Shown piece after piece: positions 19,041 through 28,886 of a stretch of 64,000 bases of DNA (position 1 is its first letter; every line of letters starts with the position of its first letter). The notes under the pieces were generated by a model, which searched no databases, was not told the origin of the DNA, and was given only the letters and a program-made list of their open reading frames with translations. The position numbers and the translations under genes are program-made. Source of the stretch: Selaginella moellendorffii (Eukaryota > Plantae > Lycopodiophyta); assembly GCF_000143415.4 (NCBI RefSeq), contig NW_003314359.1, positions 281,477 to 345,476 on the forward strand, given 5' to 3'.

Positions 19041-20888
19041 TTAGCCAACGTCTTTGACTCCAACGTACCACACGGCCGAGGCTACCATAGTAGCAACCAT
19101 GTGGCATATCTGCGTACTATGGCTTGGCTCCAGCCTCGACGTTCTGGCGAGCGTGGCAAACCAAGTAGCGCTCCCGGCAAGCATCACCTCCGCCGCGATC
19201 TTGCTCCACCTCGGCATTTCCATGTACGCATAGACGGGTCCAAAGGCGGAGCACAGGATGGTGATGCAAACGCACAGCGCCACCCGGATCCAAGGAAACG
19301 CGCTCGCTGTGGTCACCACCTTGTTACCGGATTCCTTAACCAAGGTGTCACCTTGATACGCGTACCCGAGCTCCTCGACCGCGGCATGCTCCTGAAGCTC
19401 GGAGCAAAACAATGGCTGGCGCATGAGCGTGAGAGCTGCTTCGATGCTCTGGACGTCGTGATCGGCTCTCGAGAGGATGTTTGATACCAGCGAGAGGTAT
19501 GGCGAGCTCGGCGTGCTTGATATCTTGTGATCTCTAGCGATGGCGAGCCTGGTGTGATGAACCTCGGCGAAGATCCCAATCAGCCTGCCTTTGAGCCTCT
19601 CCCGGACGCTCACGAGCGTCCGCAAGGAGAGACCGGTGCTCACCACGGTGGCCAGCCACAGCATTCCATGGCCAACGAGTCCTCTCGGCGCAAGCTTCTC
19701 CACCTTGAGCGCGCCATAGAGCCAGCCTCCCACCACGAGCAAGAGCTCGACAATGTTGAATGCTATGCTCAAGCAAGCCATGCGAGCCCGCTTCGACGTC
19801 TCCCACGAGATGATCTTGTCAGTCGCGATCGAGGCTACGTTGGCTCCGTGGGCAGTCACAACGTAGCTCACGCCATCGAATCCTAGCAGAGATAGCAACG
19901 CATCGTCGCCGGCAATGCCCTCGGCTCCAAGCTTGGCCATGACCATCCTGGGAGCGAACAGCCACACCGCAAGCCCCCGCCCGGACGCCGCCCCCATGAG
20001 CCCCACTGCGACGCACACCATGCTGTGAACGATGCAATACATCCACACCGCGGATCCTACCAAGGCCACTCGAGTCGCCGTGTTGTCTCCTACGTACTTC
20101 GCGATTGTCACGTATGGCATCACCACCCCGTCGAGCTGATACGACGTGATGTAGCGCCCCATTCCCGGATCTTGTTGCGCGTCGCTGCTGGACTCGTTCA
20201 TGGACACCGAGCGCGTTGGTCTCCGCAAGATCTCGTTGCAGATGAGCGTGGTGACACCATTGGTATCAAACTGGATGTTGTTGGCATCGCAGCTAGCAGT
20301 GTATTCCAGGAGCGCCTGGATGGTTTCACCGGGCAGCGGCGAGTACATGCCATCTGTGTCTGCGTACCTGACAGGGGAGTACTCTGGGCATCTGGGCGAG
20401 CTTGTCCAAAGCACTGCAGCGCCATGATCGTCATCCCCATGCTTTTGTCTGCCAACGAGAAGAATCAGCCATCGCTGGCGAGCGAGAACCTCTGCCAAGG
20501 TAGACACTTTCACGCACAAGGCCTGCAACTGGGCTGGCGTCCTCCAGCTTAGAAGAAGCACGTCTATCCTGGTTTTGCCGCCATTGTATCCGGGAGCGAA
20601 CACGTACCAGTTGCCACTCTGTATGGCAGAGGCGGCGGCGGAAGCACGCTGGAGAATTGCGAGTGATGCGATGGTGGACGTGATCGGGTTGCTGGGCCTC
20701 TGGGCATTGCTCGCCCTGACACCGATGCCCACGGCTCCCCAGAATGCCACAATCTGCGACGACCACGCTGCTGTTGACGACGTTGCCACATTCTGTGCCC
20801 GGGCAACCGGGACGATGGCTGCTAGCGACGCTAGAATTGGAGTTAGGAACCTTGGGAATCCTGTGATGGGATCCATACAGGTATGCAT
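19041..20888 (-). CDS. Intronless multi-pass membrane protein of unknown function (~610 aa)
   Basis: Long uninterrupted ORF with signal-peptide-like start (..LAAIVPVARA/Q), soluble middle and several C-terminal hydrophobic segments; no family recognised. Confidence 0.7.
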   Translation of the reverse strand: MHTCMDPITGFPRFLTPILASLAAIVPVARAQNVATSSTAAWSSQIVAFWGAVGIGVRASNAQRPSNPITSTIASLAILQRASAAASAIQSGNWYVFAPGYNGGKTRIDVLLLSWRTPAQLQALCVKVSTLAEVLARQRWLILLVGRQKHGDDDHGAAVLWTSSPRCPEYSPVRYADTDGMYSPLPGETIQALLEYTASCDANNIQFDTNGVTTLICNEILRRPTRSVSMNESSSDAQQDPGMGRYITSYQLDGVVMPYVTIAKYVGDNTATRVALVGSAVWMYCIVHSMVCVAVGLMGAASGRGLAVWLFAPRMVMAKLGAEGIAGDDALLSLLGFDGVSYVVTAHGANVASIATDKIISWETSKRARMACLSIAFNIVELLLVVGGWLYGALKVEKLAPRGLVGHGMLWLATVVSTGLSLRTLVSVRERLKGRLIGIFAEVHHTRLAIARDHKISSTPSSPYLSLVSNILSRADHDVQSIEAALTLMRQPLFCSELQEHAAVEELGYAYQGDTLVKESGNKVVTTASAFPWIRVALCVCITILCSAFGPVYAYMEMPRWSKIAAEVMLAGSATWFATLARTSRLEPSHSTQICHMVATMVASAVWYVGVKDVG

Positions 20889-21079
20889 CTCGAGAGGTTC
20901 TCGAGATAGACTGATAAAACACCGCACACAATGGAAAGTCAACTCGTTCCGTAATTCGCAGAGGCTGCTCCTTTGTTTTCCTCAGTCCACGAAGGAGAAA
21001 TTCAACTCCAAGACTTAAGCGTGGAGTCAAAGTTTTGATCGGTGGTTGTTCATCGACAAGCAAAAGCTTTTCTTGTTTC

Positions 21080-21660
21080 AGACTCTCAGACTAACGCTTG
21101 TTGGTTGAATTTGAATGTCTGGCTATAGTATACAATACTGGCTGATCGTCAGATTCTTGGTTCACTTCCCGTCTTGGCTCCTTGGCATTGCCTTCATGTG
21201 CAGGCTGAAACACCAGCAGGATCCATTGCTGGCTGCCCAGTACATGGACACCTTCGACTATCTGGGCTTATACATTGCCATGGCCATGATATACATCTTC
21301 TCATGAGCCAGGCAGATGGTTTCGCAGGTGTTCCACATTTTCTTCCCCTTCTGGAACCGATTCAGGTGGCCGGTCTATGTGTACCTCTTGTGGCCCAAGG
21401 AAGAGATGGATGCGTTCGAGCAGCAGCTGAGCTCGCTCATATCTTAAAGCCAGAGAGTCCACTTCCCTTTGTCCGTGGGAGCTGTGTGGGAGGTGTTCTC
21501 AGAAGCTAATGAGGAACTGGAGACATACAAGTTTGGATCAAGTTTTGGATGCATTATTGGGAAAAAAACGGCTGTTGCTTCCGAAAGCTTGAAGCCCAAA
21601 AGATCTACTAGAGCGTTTCTTGCCAAAGCCCAGAAGGATGTAATTGATAGCAGAATCTAG
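21080..21660 (+). pseudogene. Truncated, internally deleted copy (A) of the 7TM gene family
   Basis: Homologous to exon 2 of copy B (QQDPLLAAQYMDTFDYL, GAVWEVFSEANEELETYK) but lacks exon 1 and has deletions and a premature stop at ~21304. Confidence 0.85.
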
Positions 21661-22027
21661 AGGGCTGCCAACCATCTTATGCTTGGTGCCCCATGATCGA
21701 TTGATTGCTTGCAGCCATTCTTGATGAATCGAGACAACCACTGATCAAGACTTTGACTCGGTTTTTTCTACTTTATTTCCTGAGAAAAACAAAGATTTTG
21801 CAGTTTTGGTTTATTAATGGAGCCCATAGAGCAACGCGCAGTGTTTAGAGTAAATTAGTCATTAATATATAATAGTAATTTACAGTTTACCTAAATGATA
21901 ATAATTTCATCGTTAGTTTTGTAATGTTTCTAAAACTTTCGCCTTTATCCAGGCCTATTAATATATAAACTGTCTAATTAGGACTGAATATAGTCTATTC
22001 ATTTTTGTATATTAACAAAGGTATAAT

Positions 22028-22113
22028 CAATGCACCACAAATATGTATATATATTTAGAGATTATACCCTTGTTTATAATCTCTAAATATATATACATAT
22101 TCGTGGTGCATTG
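22028..22113. repeat. Near-perfect inverted repeat (39-bp arms, 8-nt loop)
   Basis: caatgcaccacaaatatgtatatatatttagagattata ... tataatctctaaatatatatacatattcgtggtgcattg, one mismatch. Confidence 0.93.
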
Positions 22114-22468
22114 TAGGTTGATGCTCTAGTGTTTAAGGGGGCCAAGAACCGAAAGATAACAAAACAAGCGAGCGTGTAACAAATTTAACGAACGAATCAA
22201 GCAGGAGTGTGGACAGGACACAACAGTAAGAACAATATTCTTGAATAAAGATATGATAGAGAATAAAATCATGGAGAAGGAGAACAAACCCTATTGCATT
22301 CCTTATCTACATGCTGTTGATGACATGGACAAGTCTAGTGCGGCCAATTGAGCTACCTATAGAAGAACTCGAAACAAATAGTCAAAGTGTTGATCAGTGG
22401 TTGTAGCTTGAAGGATTCAAGACCGATCAATCGAGCTCGCCCAATCACTGCGGCACTTGCAACTCGAG

Positions 22469-23601
22469 ATGGTCACCAGCCGCCCAGATTCTGACATAGA
22501 TTATATCCTCCTGGGCTTTGGCATTGCCACCGCAATACCCTTCACCATAGCGAATGGCGTGCTGTTTGTCCATCGCCAGCGCTCCTACTTTCATGCCCAG
22601 GGTGGGGTTTACTTCATACTCGCCAGCTCCCTGGCTGGGCTGGCTTGGATAGCAACGGTGTTTGTTAACAATGGGCACTTCAGCACAGTCGGGCCATTGC
22701 AGAGTTGCAAGCTGTGGCTGTTTTGGCTGCAAGGATTCAGCTTCTGCTTCTGGTTCATGCTCACTGCCTTTCGGCTCCGCCGCATGTACGAGCTCAGCCA
22801 CAACATCAAGAGATGGCGGTGGGAGTACTACGCTTTTGCGGCCATCTGCCTCCTTCCGGTGGTGGGCACGTCAACCGCTGCCATCTTCAGTAACTTCAAT
22901 GTGGAGCATGGAGGGTGAGCAAAAGCTTCAAACTCTCACACTAACGCTTACTGGTTTGGATTTGAATGTCTGGCAATAGCATACACTACTGCAGAATCAA
23001 CGGGAACTGGCAGATCGTCAGATTCTCGGCCTACCTTCCATATTGGCTCTTCGCCGCCGCTGTCATGTGGAGGTTGCAACGCCAGCAGGATCCATTGCTG
23101 GCTGCCGAGTACATGGACACCTTCGACTATCTGGCCTTGGTCATCGCCATCGCCGTGATATACGTCTTCTCGTATCTGACGAGCGTGAGCCGTATTGTTT
23201 CTGGCAGATGCCTCTTGACCGTCTCACAGGTCTGCCTCGTCTTCTTCCCCTTTTGGACGCGATTCGCGTGGCCCGTCTATCTGTGCCTCTTGCGGCCCAA
23301 GGAGGAGATGGACGCGTTCGAGCAGCAGCTGAGCAGCGCCGGTGCGCGAGCCTTGCTCATATCTCAAAGCCAGAGAGTCCACTTCCCTTCGTCCGAGGGA
23401 GCTGTGTGGGAGGCATTCGCAGAAGCGAACGAGGAGCTGGAGAAGTACAAGGTGAGATCAAGCTTTGGATTGCATTCTTGTGGAATAAAAAGGCTGTCGC
23501 TGCAGCATGAGATCCAGAAGCTCCAAGCCCAGAAGCTGCGTCTCCAGGAGAAGATCCGTGATCTACGAGACCAGGCAAAGCAACAGGTGATAAAGAAGTA
23601 A
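22469..23601 (+). CDS. 7TM GPCR/RGS1-like membrane protein with C-terminal coiled coil, copy B (exons 22469-22914, 22980-23451, 23506-23601; 337 aa)
   Basis: Seven hydrophobic segments; C.LW.FWLQG at the top of TM3; canonical GT-AG introns keep frame; heptad-rich tail. Confidence 0.8.
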
Positions 23602-23674
23602 TAATCCCGCTTTGAGAAAGTCAAGTGCCAGGGCTGGAAAATTGGATAGAGGGTCGAGCGAGTTTGCTTTGTCC

Positions 23675-24857
23675 ATGGCGTCTCAATGTTGCAAGCAAGG
23701 GTGTTACATGGGAGTGGTGCCCAGTCATCCGAGCACTCCCTACGACTTCACACTCCTGGCATTTGCTTTGGCCGCGACAGTACCGTTCATCGTGGCGAAT
23801 GGCGCGCTCTTCGCCCATCGCGGCCGCTCCTACTTTCGAGCACAGGGAGGTGTGTATCTCATCCTAGGCAGCTCGCTAGCGGGCTTAGTCTGGATAGCAG
23901 CCCAGTTCGTCAACAATGACCACTTCAGCAGGGTCGGGCCGCTTAGAAGCTGCGTGCTGTGGGCGTTCTGGCTCCAGGGGACGGGTATTTGCCTGTGGTT
24001 CGTGCTCACTGTTCTCCGGCTTGCTCGGATGTACGAGCTCAGCAAGAACATCGACAACTGGTCGTGGAAGTACTACGCTTTCGTGGCCTTTTGCCTGCTT
24101 CCCATAGTCATCCTGTCCACCGTTGCTGGCTTCAGTGACTTCGATGGACACGAGAAAAGGTAAAGTTCATGACTTGCCAAGTTTCATCTCTATCTCTCTC
24201 GGACTGATTGTTCTTGATAACAGCAAACCGGCGTGCAAGCCAAACAAGCATTGGAAAATCATCGTCCGGTCCGTGTATACTCCATACTGGCTGCTGCTCA
24301 TCTTCTTTATCTATAAGCTGCGCAACCAGGAGGATCCACTGCTAGCTACCGAGTACAGGGACACTTTGGACTACTTGGCTATGGCTATCGTCATTGTCAT
24401 GCTCTCCGGCGTCGCGGTTGTGACGAAAGCTAGCGATACTATCCCTGGCAGATGCTTCCTAACGTTTTCAACATGCTGTCTCGTGTTCTTTCACTTTTGG
24501 ATACGCTTCGGGTGGCCGATTTACCTATGTCTCTTCAGGCCCAAAGAGGAGATGGACAACTTCGAGCAGGAGCTAACTTACGGTGGTGCCCGAGCTCTGG
24601 ACATGGTTTACAGCCAAAGGATACACTTTCCTTCCTCTGAAGGTGCTATTTGGGAAGCTTTCTCCAAAGCTAGTGACGATCTGGACAGATACAAGGTAGA
24701 GCTTGTTTCTTTTTCTTCTTCTTCTGGCGCTCTAGCTAATGCTACACTGAAACAGGATGAAATACGGAAGCTAGAATTGCAGAAAGCGCTGCTGGAAGGG
24801 AAGATCCAAGAGTTACAAGTGCAGAAGAGAAAAGCAGCTGGATCTGGTCATTCTTAA
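23675..24857 (+). CDS. 7TM GPCR/RGS1-like protein, copy C (exons 23675-24159, 24224-24695, 24756-24857)
   Basis: Clear paralog of copy B (RSYFRAQGGVY, DPLLA.EY, HFPSSEGAIWEAF); same intron positions. Confidence 0.8.
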
Positions 24858-25298
24858 GTTAATCTATGCAAGGTTGGCATTTTGTTCTATCTCCTTTTCA
24901 ATCTTTTTGATTCTTTACTTGACTTTGAGTCCAGTACCTCAGGGAAAGTTTCAAGGAGACTGCCAAGGTCACAAATTCAATGTGCTAGTTTTCTTCGTCG
25001 TGTTCCAAAGCTTTGTTTGTTTTGCAGACTCTTCCACAACTTGACTTTGAAGCGGGTTGCTCTGCTTCCCTGTCATGATTTTTTGCCGTGGACGGACGAT
25101 GACTGCTGTTCCACGAAAAAGAGAACACGCACACACGGATCCTGAGTCTGTGTAAAGAGTACGTAAAGGACTGAATTTTCTCAAATGTTTGGACAGACTC
25201 AGAAACTCCAAGTCAAGCAGAAAACTCATGCCTTCACAATCTTCACGACATCGAGCGCGTAAGATGGTTTTTTAGTTTTGGAAAGGAAGCGACAGCTA

Positions 25299-26407
25299 AT
25301 GGATCGAACTGACACTGTCTATGACTACATACTCTTGGGCTTCGCCTTGGGAGCTGCGGTGCCATTTATCATAGCAAATGGCGTGCTCTTCGTCCATCGC
25401 AATCGCTCCTACTTTCGAGCACAGGGAGGAGTGTACCTCGTTCTGTGCAGCTCTTTAGCTGGCTTGGTCTGGATATCATCATCTTTTCTCAACGATGGTC
25501 ACTTCCAGCATACCGGGCCTTTTGTAAGCGGCGTCCGATGGGCATTTTGGCTACAAGGACTGGGGGTTTGCTCCTGGTTCATGCTCACGGTTCTCCGGCT
25601 TCGTCGGATGTACGAGCTCAGCCGGAACATCCACAAATGGTCCTGGGGAAACTACGCTCTACTGCTCGCCTCCATGCTTCCAGTCTTGGTTTTGTTCGTG
25701 GCCGCAAACTTGAAGCGAGAGAGGTAAAGTTTGATGCTCTAGTCATGTTCATTCTCCAAAGCTCGTATTATCAGCAGGGAACGTCATGGTACGCTAGACA
25801 GTGCGAGAGTACTCACTGTCCTGGCGGTCTACACTCCAAACTTGCTACTGGTTATCGTGTTTATGTACAAGCTGCGCAACCAGCAAGATCCTTTGTTGAC
25901 TGTGGAGTACGCGCACACTTGCGAGTACTTGACTATGGCGGTGGCCATCTGTTTTCTCGCTGCCATCGCGGTCTTCACAGGGGACAGCCAAAGCATTGCC
26001 GGCAGATGCTTCTTAACATTTTGCGTCTGCTGCCTCGTCTTCTTCCACTTTTGGATCCGGTTCGGGTGGCCAGTTTATTTGTGTCTCTGGAGACCGGCAG
26101 AGGACATGGATAAGTTTGAGGAGGAACTCACGTCCGCTGGTGCTCGGGCTTTGGCCGTCGTTCCCAACCAGATGCTGCATTTCCCGTCGTCAGAAGGTGC
26201 CATTTGGGAGGCTTTCTTCAAAGCGAGCGAGGAACTGGAAAGTTACAAGGTGAAAGATAAATACTCTTCTCTCATATAACAATGGTTGCTAATGCTGGAT
26301 AACAGGAAGAAATCCGGAAGATGGAAGCTCAGAAGTTGCTGTTAGAGGACAAGATACGAGAGCTGCAGTGGCAGAAGTGGACAATGGCTGGAACTGGTCA
26401 GTTTTAA
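25299..26407 (+). CDS. 7TM GPCR/RGS1-like protein, copy D (exons 25299-25723, 25778-26249, 26306-26407)
   Basis: Paralog with the same 472-nt exon 2 and the same intron phases. Confidence 0.8.
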
Positions 26408-26441
26408 GTTATTGCAAGACTTGGAAGAAATTATTCCAAAC

Positions 26442-28886
26442 TTAATAGTAGGGGACGAAGCCACGATTCACAGCCGCTCTCATCACGGCATCAATCTTGT
26501 CCACGTCAATCGTGTTGCCAACCTCGTGATGGTTCCAGTTTTCCATGGTCGCCAGGATTCCTCCCGCGTGACTTGCCTGGACGACTCCTCTCGGCATGCT
26601 TCCCTGCCAGGACAAAGAAGACGATGAGCACCACCAGCAAGTGAAAACGGAGAGACTCTCACCTCGCAAGCTCGGATTCCTTTATACTCGGGAGGCAGGC
26701 GCATTGCTGGAAGCTTGGCGTACGAGCAATCAGGACGGGTTTCCTCCATAGCCTCCTCGGTGAATTGATAGAAACAAGCTCCAGAAGGAGCGTGGAGCTG
26801 CTCCATCGCTCGCAGGGGCTCTCCAACGATCCAGGCCTGTAAATTCCAGCAAGTTACGTCCAGCTTTTCTGGGAAGGAAGCATATCATACTTTGCAGTGC
26901 TTCCCGTGCTCGAGTGACTCAACTGCGACGAGCTTGTGCTGGGATTCTTGCGGGACCGATTTTTTAAGCGACTCAAAGGCATAGGACGAGGATTTAGCCA
27001 GAACCTGAGGAAAAAACCAGAGCTTTACGTGGGAAACGCGGGCAGGAGCTAGCTGCTCACCGTCACTTCAGTGGCGCGGTGGCGGCAGAGATAATTGGCG
27101 ATGGCACGGCCAACTTTGTGCTCGACTCCGACCAGGAAAACCTCGCTAGCATCTTTTGGAAGCTTGTCAAGAACAATGGCGCTGGTTAGCGTGCTTCCGT
27201 CCACCACCTTGATGCTGAGGCCGGGGTGGTTTTTCAGAAACAGTGCTCCACTCGCATTCAAATGCTCGTCCTGTGGGGATCATAACGATGTTCACAACAT
27301 GGAGTATACACTTTGACATACCTTGTTGTGTATTCCCAGGCATATGAACTTGGCTCCTTTGTCCTGTGCGGCCAGGATGGCGCGCTCGATGAGCGCATTC
27401 AAGCTTCCGATCTCAGACGTCATTCCAAACTATACAAAACGCAAAACTTACCATCGCACAGCAAGATGAAAAGTATACTCACGTGAAAGCTAAACCTCGG
27501 GATCGCCCATGTCTGCGCGAGAACCTTGTCGACGGTGTGCTCCTCAACAGTGAACGGGCTCCCAAACGCCCACAGCAACAGCATAGCGGGGAGCGCCAGA
27601 GGATACAGGAGCCAAATGTACCACTTCCTGCAATACGGCTGCGCTGCAAAAGATGGTATCCCAAACGACAAGTGGAAGACCGATAAGGGGTCAGTCGGGT
27701 GCGTTAAGAACACGAAATCCACCAACTCCGTCCTGCCTGCGTGGTCACGCAAGTTATAAGTCCCGACGAAGCTGGAAAAGAAAAAAAACGACAAAACAAA
27801 GTACCTTGACGAGCTGCAAGATGGAGCTGATCGCTTGTCTTGTCTACGGTCCCATAAATGTAGTCGTATAGGGGAACGAAGAGGCAGAAATTTGTGTGGA
27901 CCTGCGTGTGATGGAGAGAATGGAACCTGGAAGGATAGGAGATGTGGAGGATAAGCAGTTGAAAAGATAGAAAAACTTACGATGGAGTGTAGACGAGGTA
28001 CTTGAGCAGAGGAAGAGCTTGAAACATCCAGGATGGCATGAACTCCCAGTTGCAATGGCCAATGTAGTTCATGAAATCAAACCACAGCATGTAGGAGTAG
28101 ATGAGGGCGAGCGAGGCGGTGCCAAGGAAGAGGTTGACAATGAGCGTGGAGCCAAAGAGGACCGCGTAGCTCAGGTGCTCGGCAAAAGGATGGACGTTGC
28201 CAGTCACGGCCTGGGTGACAAAGGAGAGATGGTGGTGGGAATGGTAGCGGCGGTAGAGAGAATGGTGGTGGAGGGCGCGATGGAACCAGTAATAGAGGAA
28301 CTCCACGGGTCCCAGGTGCCAGAGGATGGTGATGACCAAACCCCTCCAATCCCACACGGCATGGTTCGGCAAGCACAGTGGCGAGAACTGGTACGCGAGC
28401 AACATCAGCGCCTGGAGCAGTATGAAATCCTCCCTGAGTGACGGAAGAAACAAAAGAGAAAGAAGCCGTGAGCGCGCGCGCGCGAGAGAGAGAGAGAGAG
28501 ATTTGACAAAGTCTGTGATCGCATACCAATCTCTTTCCCTGTCCAGCTGATCGAACTTCATCCCCTTGGTCTGGACCTGGTGCTTCTTGACTATGTCGTG
28601 GACGCTGGTGACCGTGATCCATAGCTGGCCCTGGATATAGCGCAGCGCCGCGAGCACGAGGATATGGAGGCTAAAGTTGTCCCTCGAGCGGCCCTCCGGG
28701 GTCATCGCGCTTCGCACTGCATTGGCCACCAGAGGCAAGTAGAGGAGATACTGCCAAGATCAAGAGACAACGAGAGAGATTTAGGAATGCGCATGCATGC
28801 ATGTACAGCGAGAGAAAGAGAGAAACCTTGAAGCTTCCAAGCCTCTCCCATGGCCAGTGCGTGAGCAACCCAGGATTGATCGCCAT
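26442..28886 (-). CDS. CER1/CER3(WAX2)-family very-long-chain alkane-forming enzyme, CER3-like, multi-exon
   Basis: [13 protein letters not shown] start; His boxes HRALHH, YHSHHH, FHSLHH; VDFVFLTH; C-terminal WAX2 domain HAGG...[15 protein letters not shown]. Confidence 0.92.

Follow-up and report, generated by a model that had tools for sequence, protein, structure and literature searches.

A tandem array of seven-transmembrane (7TM) receptor-like genes lies on the plus strand of a 64,000-nucleotide (nt) window of the Selaginella moellendorffii genome (contig NW_003314359.1, positions 281,477 to 345,476; the window is the whole stretch that was analysed, and coordinates below refer to it unless another scaffold is named). 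Between positions 21058 and 26407 the array contains one dead and three intact copies of a single gene. The intact paralogs, which we call A, B and C, occupy 22469-26407 and are each built from three exons, as follows.

22469-22914, plus strand: copy A exon 1, with the start codon and transmembrane segments TM1 to TM4, delimited by open reading frame (ORF) and hydropathy; its junction 22914/22980 is present in the RNA contigs of four runs.
22980-23451, plus strand: copy A exon 2, 472 nt, encoding the cysteine of extracellular loop 2 (ECL2), TM5 to TM7, HFPSSEGAVWEAF and the start of the coiled coil.
23506-23601, plus strand: copy A exon 3, encoding the coiled-coil tail and the stop codon; junction 23451/23506 is present in four runs.
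23675-24159, plus strand: copy B exon 1, corresponding to residues 289-449 of the NCBI model P0019; junction 24159/24224 is present in four runs.
24224-24695, plus strand: copy B exon 2, 472 nt.
24756-24857, plus strand: copy B exon 3, with coil and stop codon.
25299-25723, plus strand: copy C exon 1, with Gly instead of Cys at the top of TM3.
25778-26249, plus strand: copy C exon 2, 472 nt, with Gly instead of the ECL2 Cys.
26306-26407, plus strand: copy C exon 3, with coil and stop codon.

The encoded proteins are 337 (A), 352 (B) and 332 (C) amino acids (aa) long. Exon 2 measures exactly 472 nt in all three copies, and their introns are all of the GT..AG type and 54-65 nt in length. To this structure we added RNA evidence in the form of assembled contigs from four public runs, drawn from four studies and placed on positions 20950-26900; such contigs inform on junctions and on presence, and are silent on levels, strands and transcript ends. 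All six predicted introns were excised at the exact predicted bases in every one of the four runs. For copies A and B the transcripts end in exon 3, without a junction to any further coding exon, and the contigs revealed no extra 5′ exon. The NCBI model derived from this window (XP_024519061.1, P0019, 640 aa) joins part of copy A to copy B. Its N-terminus is identical to that of copy A, and its residues 289-640 are the spliced copy B product, an exact match exon by exon.

The three proteins share a distinctive layout. Hydropathy places four TM segments in exon 1 and three in exon 2 of every copy, preceded by an N-terminus of only 9-24 residues. The motif HFPSSEGA[VI]WEAF is invariant across A, B and C, and a leucine-zipper-like helix follows approximately 45 residues past TM7. 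This tail comprises five heptads in an identical register in all three copies (the register was set by reading exon 3 together with the 17 residues that close exon 2), with F-L-I-K-I at the a positions, including a conserved Lys, and V/I-A-Y-L/M-L-L at the d positions. Cysteines at the top of TM3 and in ECL2, a pair that is a GPCR (G-protein-coupled receptor) hallmark, are found together in A, in B and in every relative of full length; copy C alone has Gly at both positions. We infer a TM3-ECL2 disulfide in A and B. Pairwise amino-acid identity is 53-60%, and the ratio of nonsynonymous to synonymous substitution rates (dN/dS) among the copies, from codon counts pooled over exons 1 and 2, is 0.23-0.27 with dS near saturation, so that the shared features cannot be put down to chance. 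A, B and C are under purifying selection. The first-pass annotation, made from the sequence of the window, had described a tandem array of three intact paralogs and a pseudogene with a shared exon structure and a 472-nt exon 2, whose products have seven hydrophobic helices, a very short N-terminus, an HFPSSEGA.WEAF motif and a heptad-rich tail. Each element of that description holds, the motif being identical apart from its V/I position, and the tail string that it quoted is copy A read across the RNA-confirmed exon 2/3 junction.

Relatives of these proteins are not easily found. Direct Pfam scans of the exons and of the full-length Selaginella proteins returned nothing meaningful, and a word-based protein search from copy A retrieved just two short NCBI models (P0001, 163 aa; P0002, 310 aa). 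We therefore turned to an exhaustive phmmer search, in which residues 15-200 of P0002 (TM2-4 and TM7 plus the motif) were compared with 1.84 billion representative proteins, and which yielded 17 matches. One Selaginella protein (P0003) comes from a different scaffold; it is a copy with 96% identity and presumably belongs to the other haplotype. Beyond Selaginella, the family has members in the lycophyte Diphasiastrum and the ferns Psilotum, Adiantum and Pteridium, in the liverworts Riccia sorocarpa and R. fluitans, in the moss Sphagnum balticum and in the streptophyte alga Klebsormidium nitens, as well as among unnamed transcript contigs. Seed-plant proteins were absent from the matches of the exhaustive search. 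All full-length members have a short N-terminus, seven TM segments, the TM3 and ECL2 cysteines and a heptad tail. Indeed, Klebsormidium, liverworts, Sphagnum, lycophytes and ferns all show the combination of a 7TM domain and a coil without a Venus-flytrap domain. In the databases these proteins are labelled 'uncharacterized' or bear automatic profile names only, for example 'G-protein coupled receptors family 3 profile' in UniProt for some of them.

A maximum-likelihood tree of 22 rows was rooted on the Klebsormidium protein, with A and C represented by their exon-2 pieces alone. It revealed a deep split into two groups, one of which, with liverwort, ferns and lycophytes, tracks plant phylogeny. 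Inside a lycophyte clade, the Selaginella copies all fall into one clade (support 100/100), in which C branches first, then A, then B together with B-like genes. The earlier proposal of an expanded, uncharacterised family of 7TM proteins resembling GPCRs and ending in a heptad tail is supported.

Two further loci on scaffold GL377574.1 carry copies of these genes. At approximately 1.43 Mb (L001:9843-11129) there is a dispersed A-like copy with 87.5% DNA identity to copy A and apparent frameshifts in exons 1 and 2; the models P0001 and P0002 are mis-modelled products of this copy. At approximately 2.77 Mb (L002:9600-14900) there is a second cluster, where two B-like genes (P0048 and P0049) stand in a 3.65-kb tandem unit; they are 97% identical to one another and each is 85% identical to B. 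An A-like exon 2 remnant precedes each of the two, and an A-B unit was therefore duplicated. Relative to B they show a dN/dS of about 0.7, which suggests relaxed or diversifying selection after a recent duplication.

What kind of 7TM proteins are these? Among the relatives the sole recurrent Pfam family is 7tm_3 (PF00003), the membrane domain of class C GPCRs. Three relatives exceed its gathering threshold of 33.5 bits (P0008 at 53.6, P0023 at 37.5 and P0006 at 33.9), and four others match it with E values of 4e-7 to 7e-6. When the Selaginella clade was aligned by hhalign to its 7tm_3-positive sister clade, the alignment ran from TM1 through the coil over 329 columns, with a probability of 99.9% and an E value of 2.9e-36. 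By this profile alignment the Selaginella clade is shown to be homologous over its full length to relatives that pass the 7tm_3 threshold. Similarly, when language-model features were searched one exon at a time, exon 1 and exon 2 each led to 7tm_3 clusters with scores of 0.86-0.90.

The predicted fold points in the same direction, and with it four lines of evidence, independent of one another, agree on class C. Copy B was modelled with AlphaFold2 from an alignment of 23 rows, without templates; the model (mean predicted local distance difference test 81.3, predicted template-modelling score 0.72) has seven TM helices, and a further long helix spans residues 300-349. The top 45 Foldseek hits of this model were all class C receptors, as were the top 50 by VIA-align, where GABA-B2, GPR156, CaSR and mGlu aligned over 240-265 residues with Z scores of 19-22 and root-mean-square deviations of 3-4 Å. 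An independent fold search against all 48,161 representative PDB chains placed class C chains at ranks 1-12 and 14-18 (Z 17-21.2), including fly and human GABA-B, GPR156, mGlu, CaSR, GPR158, TAS1R and GPRC5D; rank 13 fell to a de novo designed GPCR-like fold (Z 17.9), and classes A, B/adhesion and F reached a Z of at most 15.3. The fold as modelled is thus shown to match the class C membrane domain better than that of any other GPCR class, and by the same model its nearest branch is GABA-B/GPR156. The first-pass annotation had proposed 7tm_3 as a profile for comparison, and had named fewer than seven TM helices or a non-GPCR fold as grounds for giving up its interpretation. The comparison with 7tm_3 is positive, both through the relatives above the Pfam threshold and through the fold ranking, and the model has seven helices arranged in a GPCR fold.

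With an N-terminus of 9-24 residues and no further 5′ exon in the RNA contigs, the proteins have neither a Venus-flytrap nor a cysteine-rich ectodomain. The missing flytrap bars a canonical class C architecture and does not bar membership of the 7TM family. In fact, the absence of a flytrap is compatible with class C, because the accepted members GPR156, GPR158 and GPRC5 also lack a Venus flytrap. Taking these results together, we hold with a probability of about four in five that the locus is a lineage-specific tandem expansion in S. moellendorffii of an old streptophyte family of class-C-type (7tm_3; GABA-B/GPR156-like) 7TM receptors. So understood, the family is a flytrap-less, zipper-tailed plant branch of class C.

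Several observations weigh against this interpretation. The window proteins have no Pfam match even at E ≤ 1, and when the family profile and the 7tm_3-positive relative P0008 were searched against PDB chains, neither matched a solved class C receptor by sequence; the sequence link of the window proteins to 7tm_3 is therefore transitive. Exon-profile searches of the PDB chains likewise gave no receptor matches, and the relationship to solved class C receptors is, by sequence comparison, remote. The fold evidence comes from one predicted model based on a 23-row alignment; a fold search of the ESM Atlas, with template-modelling scores below 0.35, was uninformative. Copy C is without the putative disulfide and its C-terminus is altered in the RNA contigs, as described below. 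Regarding the functional side, the e/g charges of the tail do not separate homo- from hetero-pairs, and land-plant Gα has been reported to be self-activating without a receptor acting as guanine nucleotide exchange factor (GEF) (PMC3386157).

Comparison with known receptors helps to delimit what the plant proteins might do. In GABA-B the cytosolic coiled coil pairs the two subunits. The 7TM domain of GABA-B (GB1/GB2; PDB 7eb2, 7c7q, 9jr0) is the best or tied-best structural match to the plant model (Z 21-22 over 248-265 residues), and after TM7 the plant family has a five-heptad helix, a putative cytosolic coiled coil, which is found in members as distant as Klebsormidium and the ferns. Unlike GABA-B, the plant proteins have no Venus flytrap and no sushi domains, their coil starts approximately 45 residues past TM7 and shows no hetero-specific charge pattern, and sequence identity is 9-16%. 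The first-pass annotation had likened the tail to the GABA-B coil. Since the 7TM domain, too, belongs to class C and resembles those of GABA-B and GPR156, this comparison is apt. When searched by sequence against PDB chains, the family tail gave weak leucine-zipper matches.

GPR156 is an orphan, GABA-B-related receptor that forms a constitutively active dimer without a Venus flytrap. Like the plant proteins it belongs to class C, has the 7TM region as its only domain and begins with a short N-terminus; its structures (PDB 8ieb, 8iei, 8yk0, 8yjp) tie for the top match (Z 20.6-21.4). By analogy, it may serve as the best model for flytrap-less class C function. It differs in being an animal protein of 9-11% identity, whose tail is long, mostly disordered and without a short leucine zipper. 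Dictyostelium receptors of the Grl family, which presumably keep a large extracellular ligand-binding domain, were not among the exhaustive phmmer matches. Like the plant family, they (GrlJ, for example) are non-animal and GABA-B-related class C (family 3) receptors (PMC1885808). GPR158/GPR179 and the GPRC5 proteins likewise have the class C 7TM fold without a flytrap (Z 17-18.5); unlike the plant proteins, GPR158 carries a large Cache-type ectodomain, and the plant tail motif and coil are missing from all of them. GPR158 is described as working via its cytosolic partner RGS7-Gβ5 and not through G-protein activation (PMC8611064).

These comparisons suggest how the proteins might operate. They would sit in the membrane with the N-terminus outside and the C-terminus inside, so that Arg/Lys-rich loops 1-3 face the cytosol. 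Dimerisation would occur through the 7TM bundle, as in all class C receptors, and the cytosolic coil would add a parallel homo- or heterodimer contact, as in GABA-B1/B2. Homo- and hetero-pairs are both plausible, since A, B and C share one a/d core and their e/g charges favour neither kind of pair; indeed, scoring of g-e′ charges gave two attractive and two repulsive contacts for every pairing, with no preference. Heterodimerisation through the tail, as the first-pass annotation had envisaged, may occur, with no charge-based advantage over homodimerisation. In the absence of an ectodomain, a ligand would act in the 7TM cavity or on the loops, or the receptor would be constitutively active like GPR156. 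The signal would then pass to a cytosolic partner, for which the single Selaginella Gα/XLG-Gβγ set is the leading candidate. Selaginella has one Gα, one Gβ, one Gγ and one 7TM-RGS protein (PMC3386157). We infer both tail dimerisation and G-protein coupling of A, B and C from these parallels, and would give such coupling roughly one chance in three.

A role independent of G proteins seems somewhat likelier than coupling. By this account the identity of the proteins is exactly as proposed above and only the output step differs: proteins of class C fold would signal outside heterotrimeric G proteins, as a dimeric scaffold, as a trafficking or regulatory subunit or as a receptor whose coil recruits another cytosolic partner. 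We regard this as a serious contender that falls just short of an even chance. It is consistent with the self-activation of plant Gα and with the lack of any plant 7TM protein with proven GEF activity (PMC3386157, PMC3718340). GPR158 and GPRC5D are among the structural matches, and GPR158 and the GPRC5 proteins work largely outside classical G-protein activation. In addition, the most conserved soluble part of the plant proteins is the tail (HFPSSEGA.WEAF plus coil) and not a loop known for G-protein contact. Set against this, the top structural matches are G-protein-coupled (GABA-B2, GPR156, CaSR, mGlu), and each land-plant lineage in which the family was seen also has Gα and/or XLG-type subunits (PMC3718340).

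A different identity altogether was implied by the RGS1-like label of the first-pass annotation, namely that these are paralogs of plant 7TM-RGS proteins that lost the RGS box and gained a coil. We consider this very improbable. The label drew on a C.LW..W..G similarity in TM3 and on nothing more, to which one may add that one 7TM-RGS gene does exist in Selaginella (PMC3386157) and that AtRGS1-type proteins are also plant 7TM proteins with a short N-terminus and a cytosolic C-terminal module. Yet the RGS domain (PF00615) is absent from every exon, from every relative and from the downstream DNA, and no RGS-domain protein is found among the 17 matches of the exhaustive search. Splicing of the transcripts to a downstream RGS exon, which would have made the genes ordinary RGS1 genes, was not seen in the RNA contigs of the four studies: transcripts finish in the coil exon, and the next gene is a convergent CER1-like gene. 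Sequence, language-model features and fold all indicate 7tm_3, and the coil architecture is already present in Klebsormidium. The array proteins are therefore not RGS1-type by the defining feature of that type, the RGS box; homology of the 7TM halves, which were not compared directly, was suggested by no search.

Least credible of all is an assignment to cAMP-receptor/GCR1-like (class E) or class B-like proteins, which takes its cue from UniProt's automatic naming of several Selaginella members as 'G-protein coupled receptors family 2 profile 2 domain-containing protein' and is countered by the absence of a Dicty_CAR or 7tm_2 Pfam match from every member, 7tm_3 being the family that recurs, by the 'family 3 profile' names of other members and by a Z of 15.0 for a class B/adhesion chain against 20-22 for class C. 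The 'family 2 profile' names of the Selaginella members are supported neither by Pfam nor by the fold ranking.

The class C assignment bears on an old dispute, the existence of any true plant GPCR, in which reviews state that plants lack this receptor type. In homology and fold, the locus contradicts those reviews. A eukaryote-wide survey goes no further than to describe the embryophyte GPCR system as reduced (PMC3971589), and a literature search on plant receptors of the class C or 7tm_3 type turned up no paper on these proteins. Streptophyte algae, liverworts, mosses, lycophytes and ferns possess an expressed family, under selection, that combines a class C membrane domain with a GABA-B-like helix predicted to pair. 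A much bolder proposal is that class C GPCRs still work in seed-free land plants and in the algal relatives of these plants, as flytrap-less, coil-paired dimers acting on the plant heterotrimeric G protein, and this we regard as unlikely. If it were true, receptor-driven G-protein signalling would have been present in the land-plant ancestor and would be lost or undetectable in seed plants, and paralogs mixing through a common zipper would provide Selaginella with a small combinatorial receptor repertoire. The family offers a concrete candidate for coupling between a receptor and the plant G protein, with tractable relatives among liverworts and ferns. It also offers structural work a natural minimal class C receptor of approximately 340 residues without an ectodomain.

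The RNA contigs revealed several additional features of the array. The stop codon of A and the start codon of B are only 73 nt apart (23602-23674), and in several runs the contigs are continuous from A exon 3 into B exon 1; the model XP_024519061.1 likewise fuses A and B. This continuity could be due to read-through or shared transcripts, or to overlapping untranslated regions (UTRs) merged by assembly. In B exon 1, six clustered base differences at 23824-23900 are present in the contigs of three of the four runs, at approximately a quarter to a third of the depth, and probably represent the allele of the other haplotype (P0003) or a B-like paralog. In the 3′ UTR of copy B two introns are spliced out, 24873-24934 and 24968-25027. 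RNA cover is nearly unbroken from B to C, and the copy C contigs begin at 25060, immediately past position 25059, where there is a 1-nt indel variant.

At the other end of copy C, the contigs of all four runs lack an additional GT..AG intron at 26397-26451, whose removal joins 26396 to 26452 (in one run the acceptor lies 3 nt upstream). Excision of this intron swaps the last three residues of copy C for a 58-residue extension ending at 26627, as checked in frame against the ORF at 26412-26627. The extension has no Pfam match, and its coding sequence lies antisense to the convergent CER1-like gene, opposite the last exon of that gene.

The dead copy stands at the upstream end of the array, where two features were recorded.

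21058-21660, plus strand: A-like pseudogene without exon 1, in which remains of intron 1, exon 2, intron 2 and exon 3 survive.
21621-21677, minus strand: inverted 57-nt piece of the exon 1 start at the end of the pseudogene, 79% complementary to 22467-22523 in a repeat search.

The 5′ end of the pseudogene falls within intron 1, with no exon 1 upstream. It is 82% identical to copy A by alignment, and tblastn gives 63% identity to A exon 2. Its lesions include deletions of 18, 23, 10 and 18 nt, in-frame TGA/TAA stops and the loss of both splice sites of intron 2, the donor being destroyed and the acceptor deleted. RNA cover is essentially nil, with none in two of the four runs and traces in the other two. 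Between the pseudogene and copy A, an AT-rich stretch contains at 22028-22113 an inverted repeat that is near-perfect over 39 nt and has a spacer of 8 nt; the repeat looks like a small miniature inverted-repeat transposable element or hairpin element.

The array has minus-strand neighbours on both sides. Directly upstream of the pseudogene, at 19041-20942, there is a 633-codon ORF with several hydrophobic stretches and no Pfam match. The next gene downstream, at 26440-28738, is the convergent CER1/CER3-like gene, which encodes FA_hydroxylase and CER1-like_C domains and whose 3′ end overlaps the copy C transcript; one of its minus-strand introns (26603-26661) is seen in RNA.

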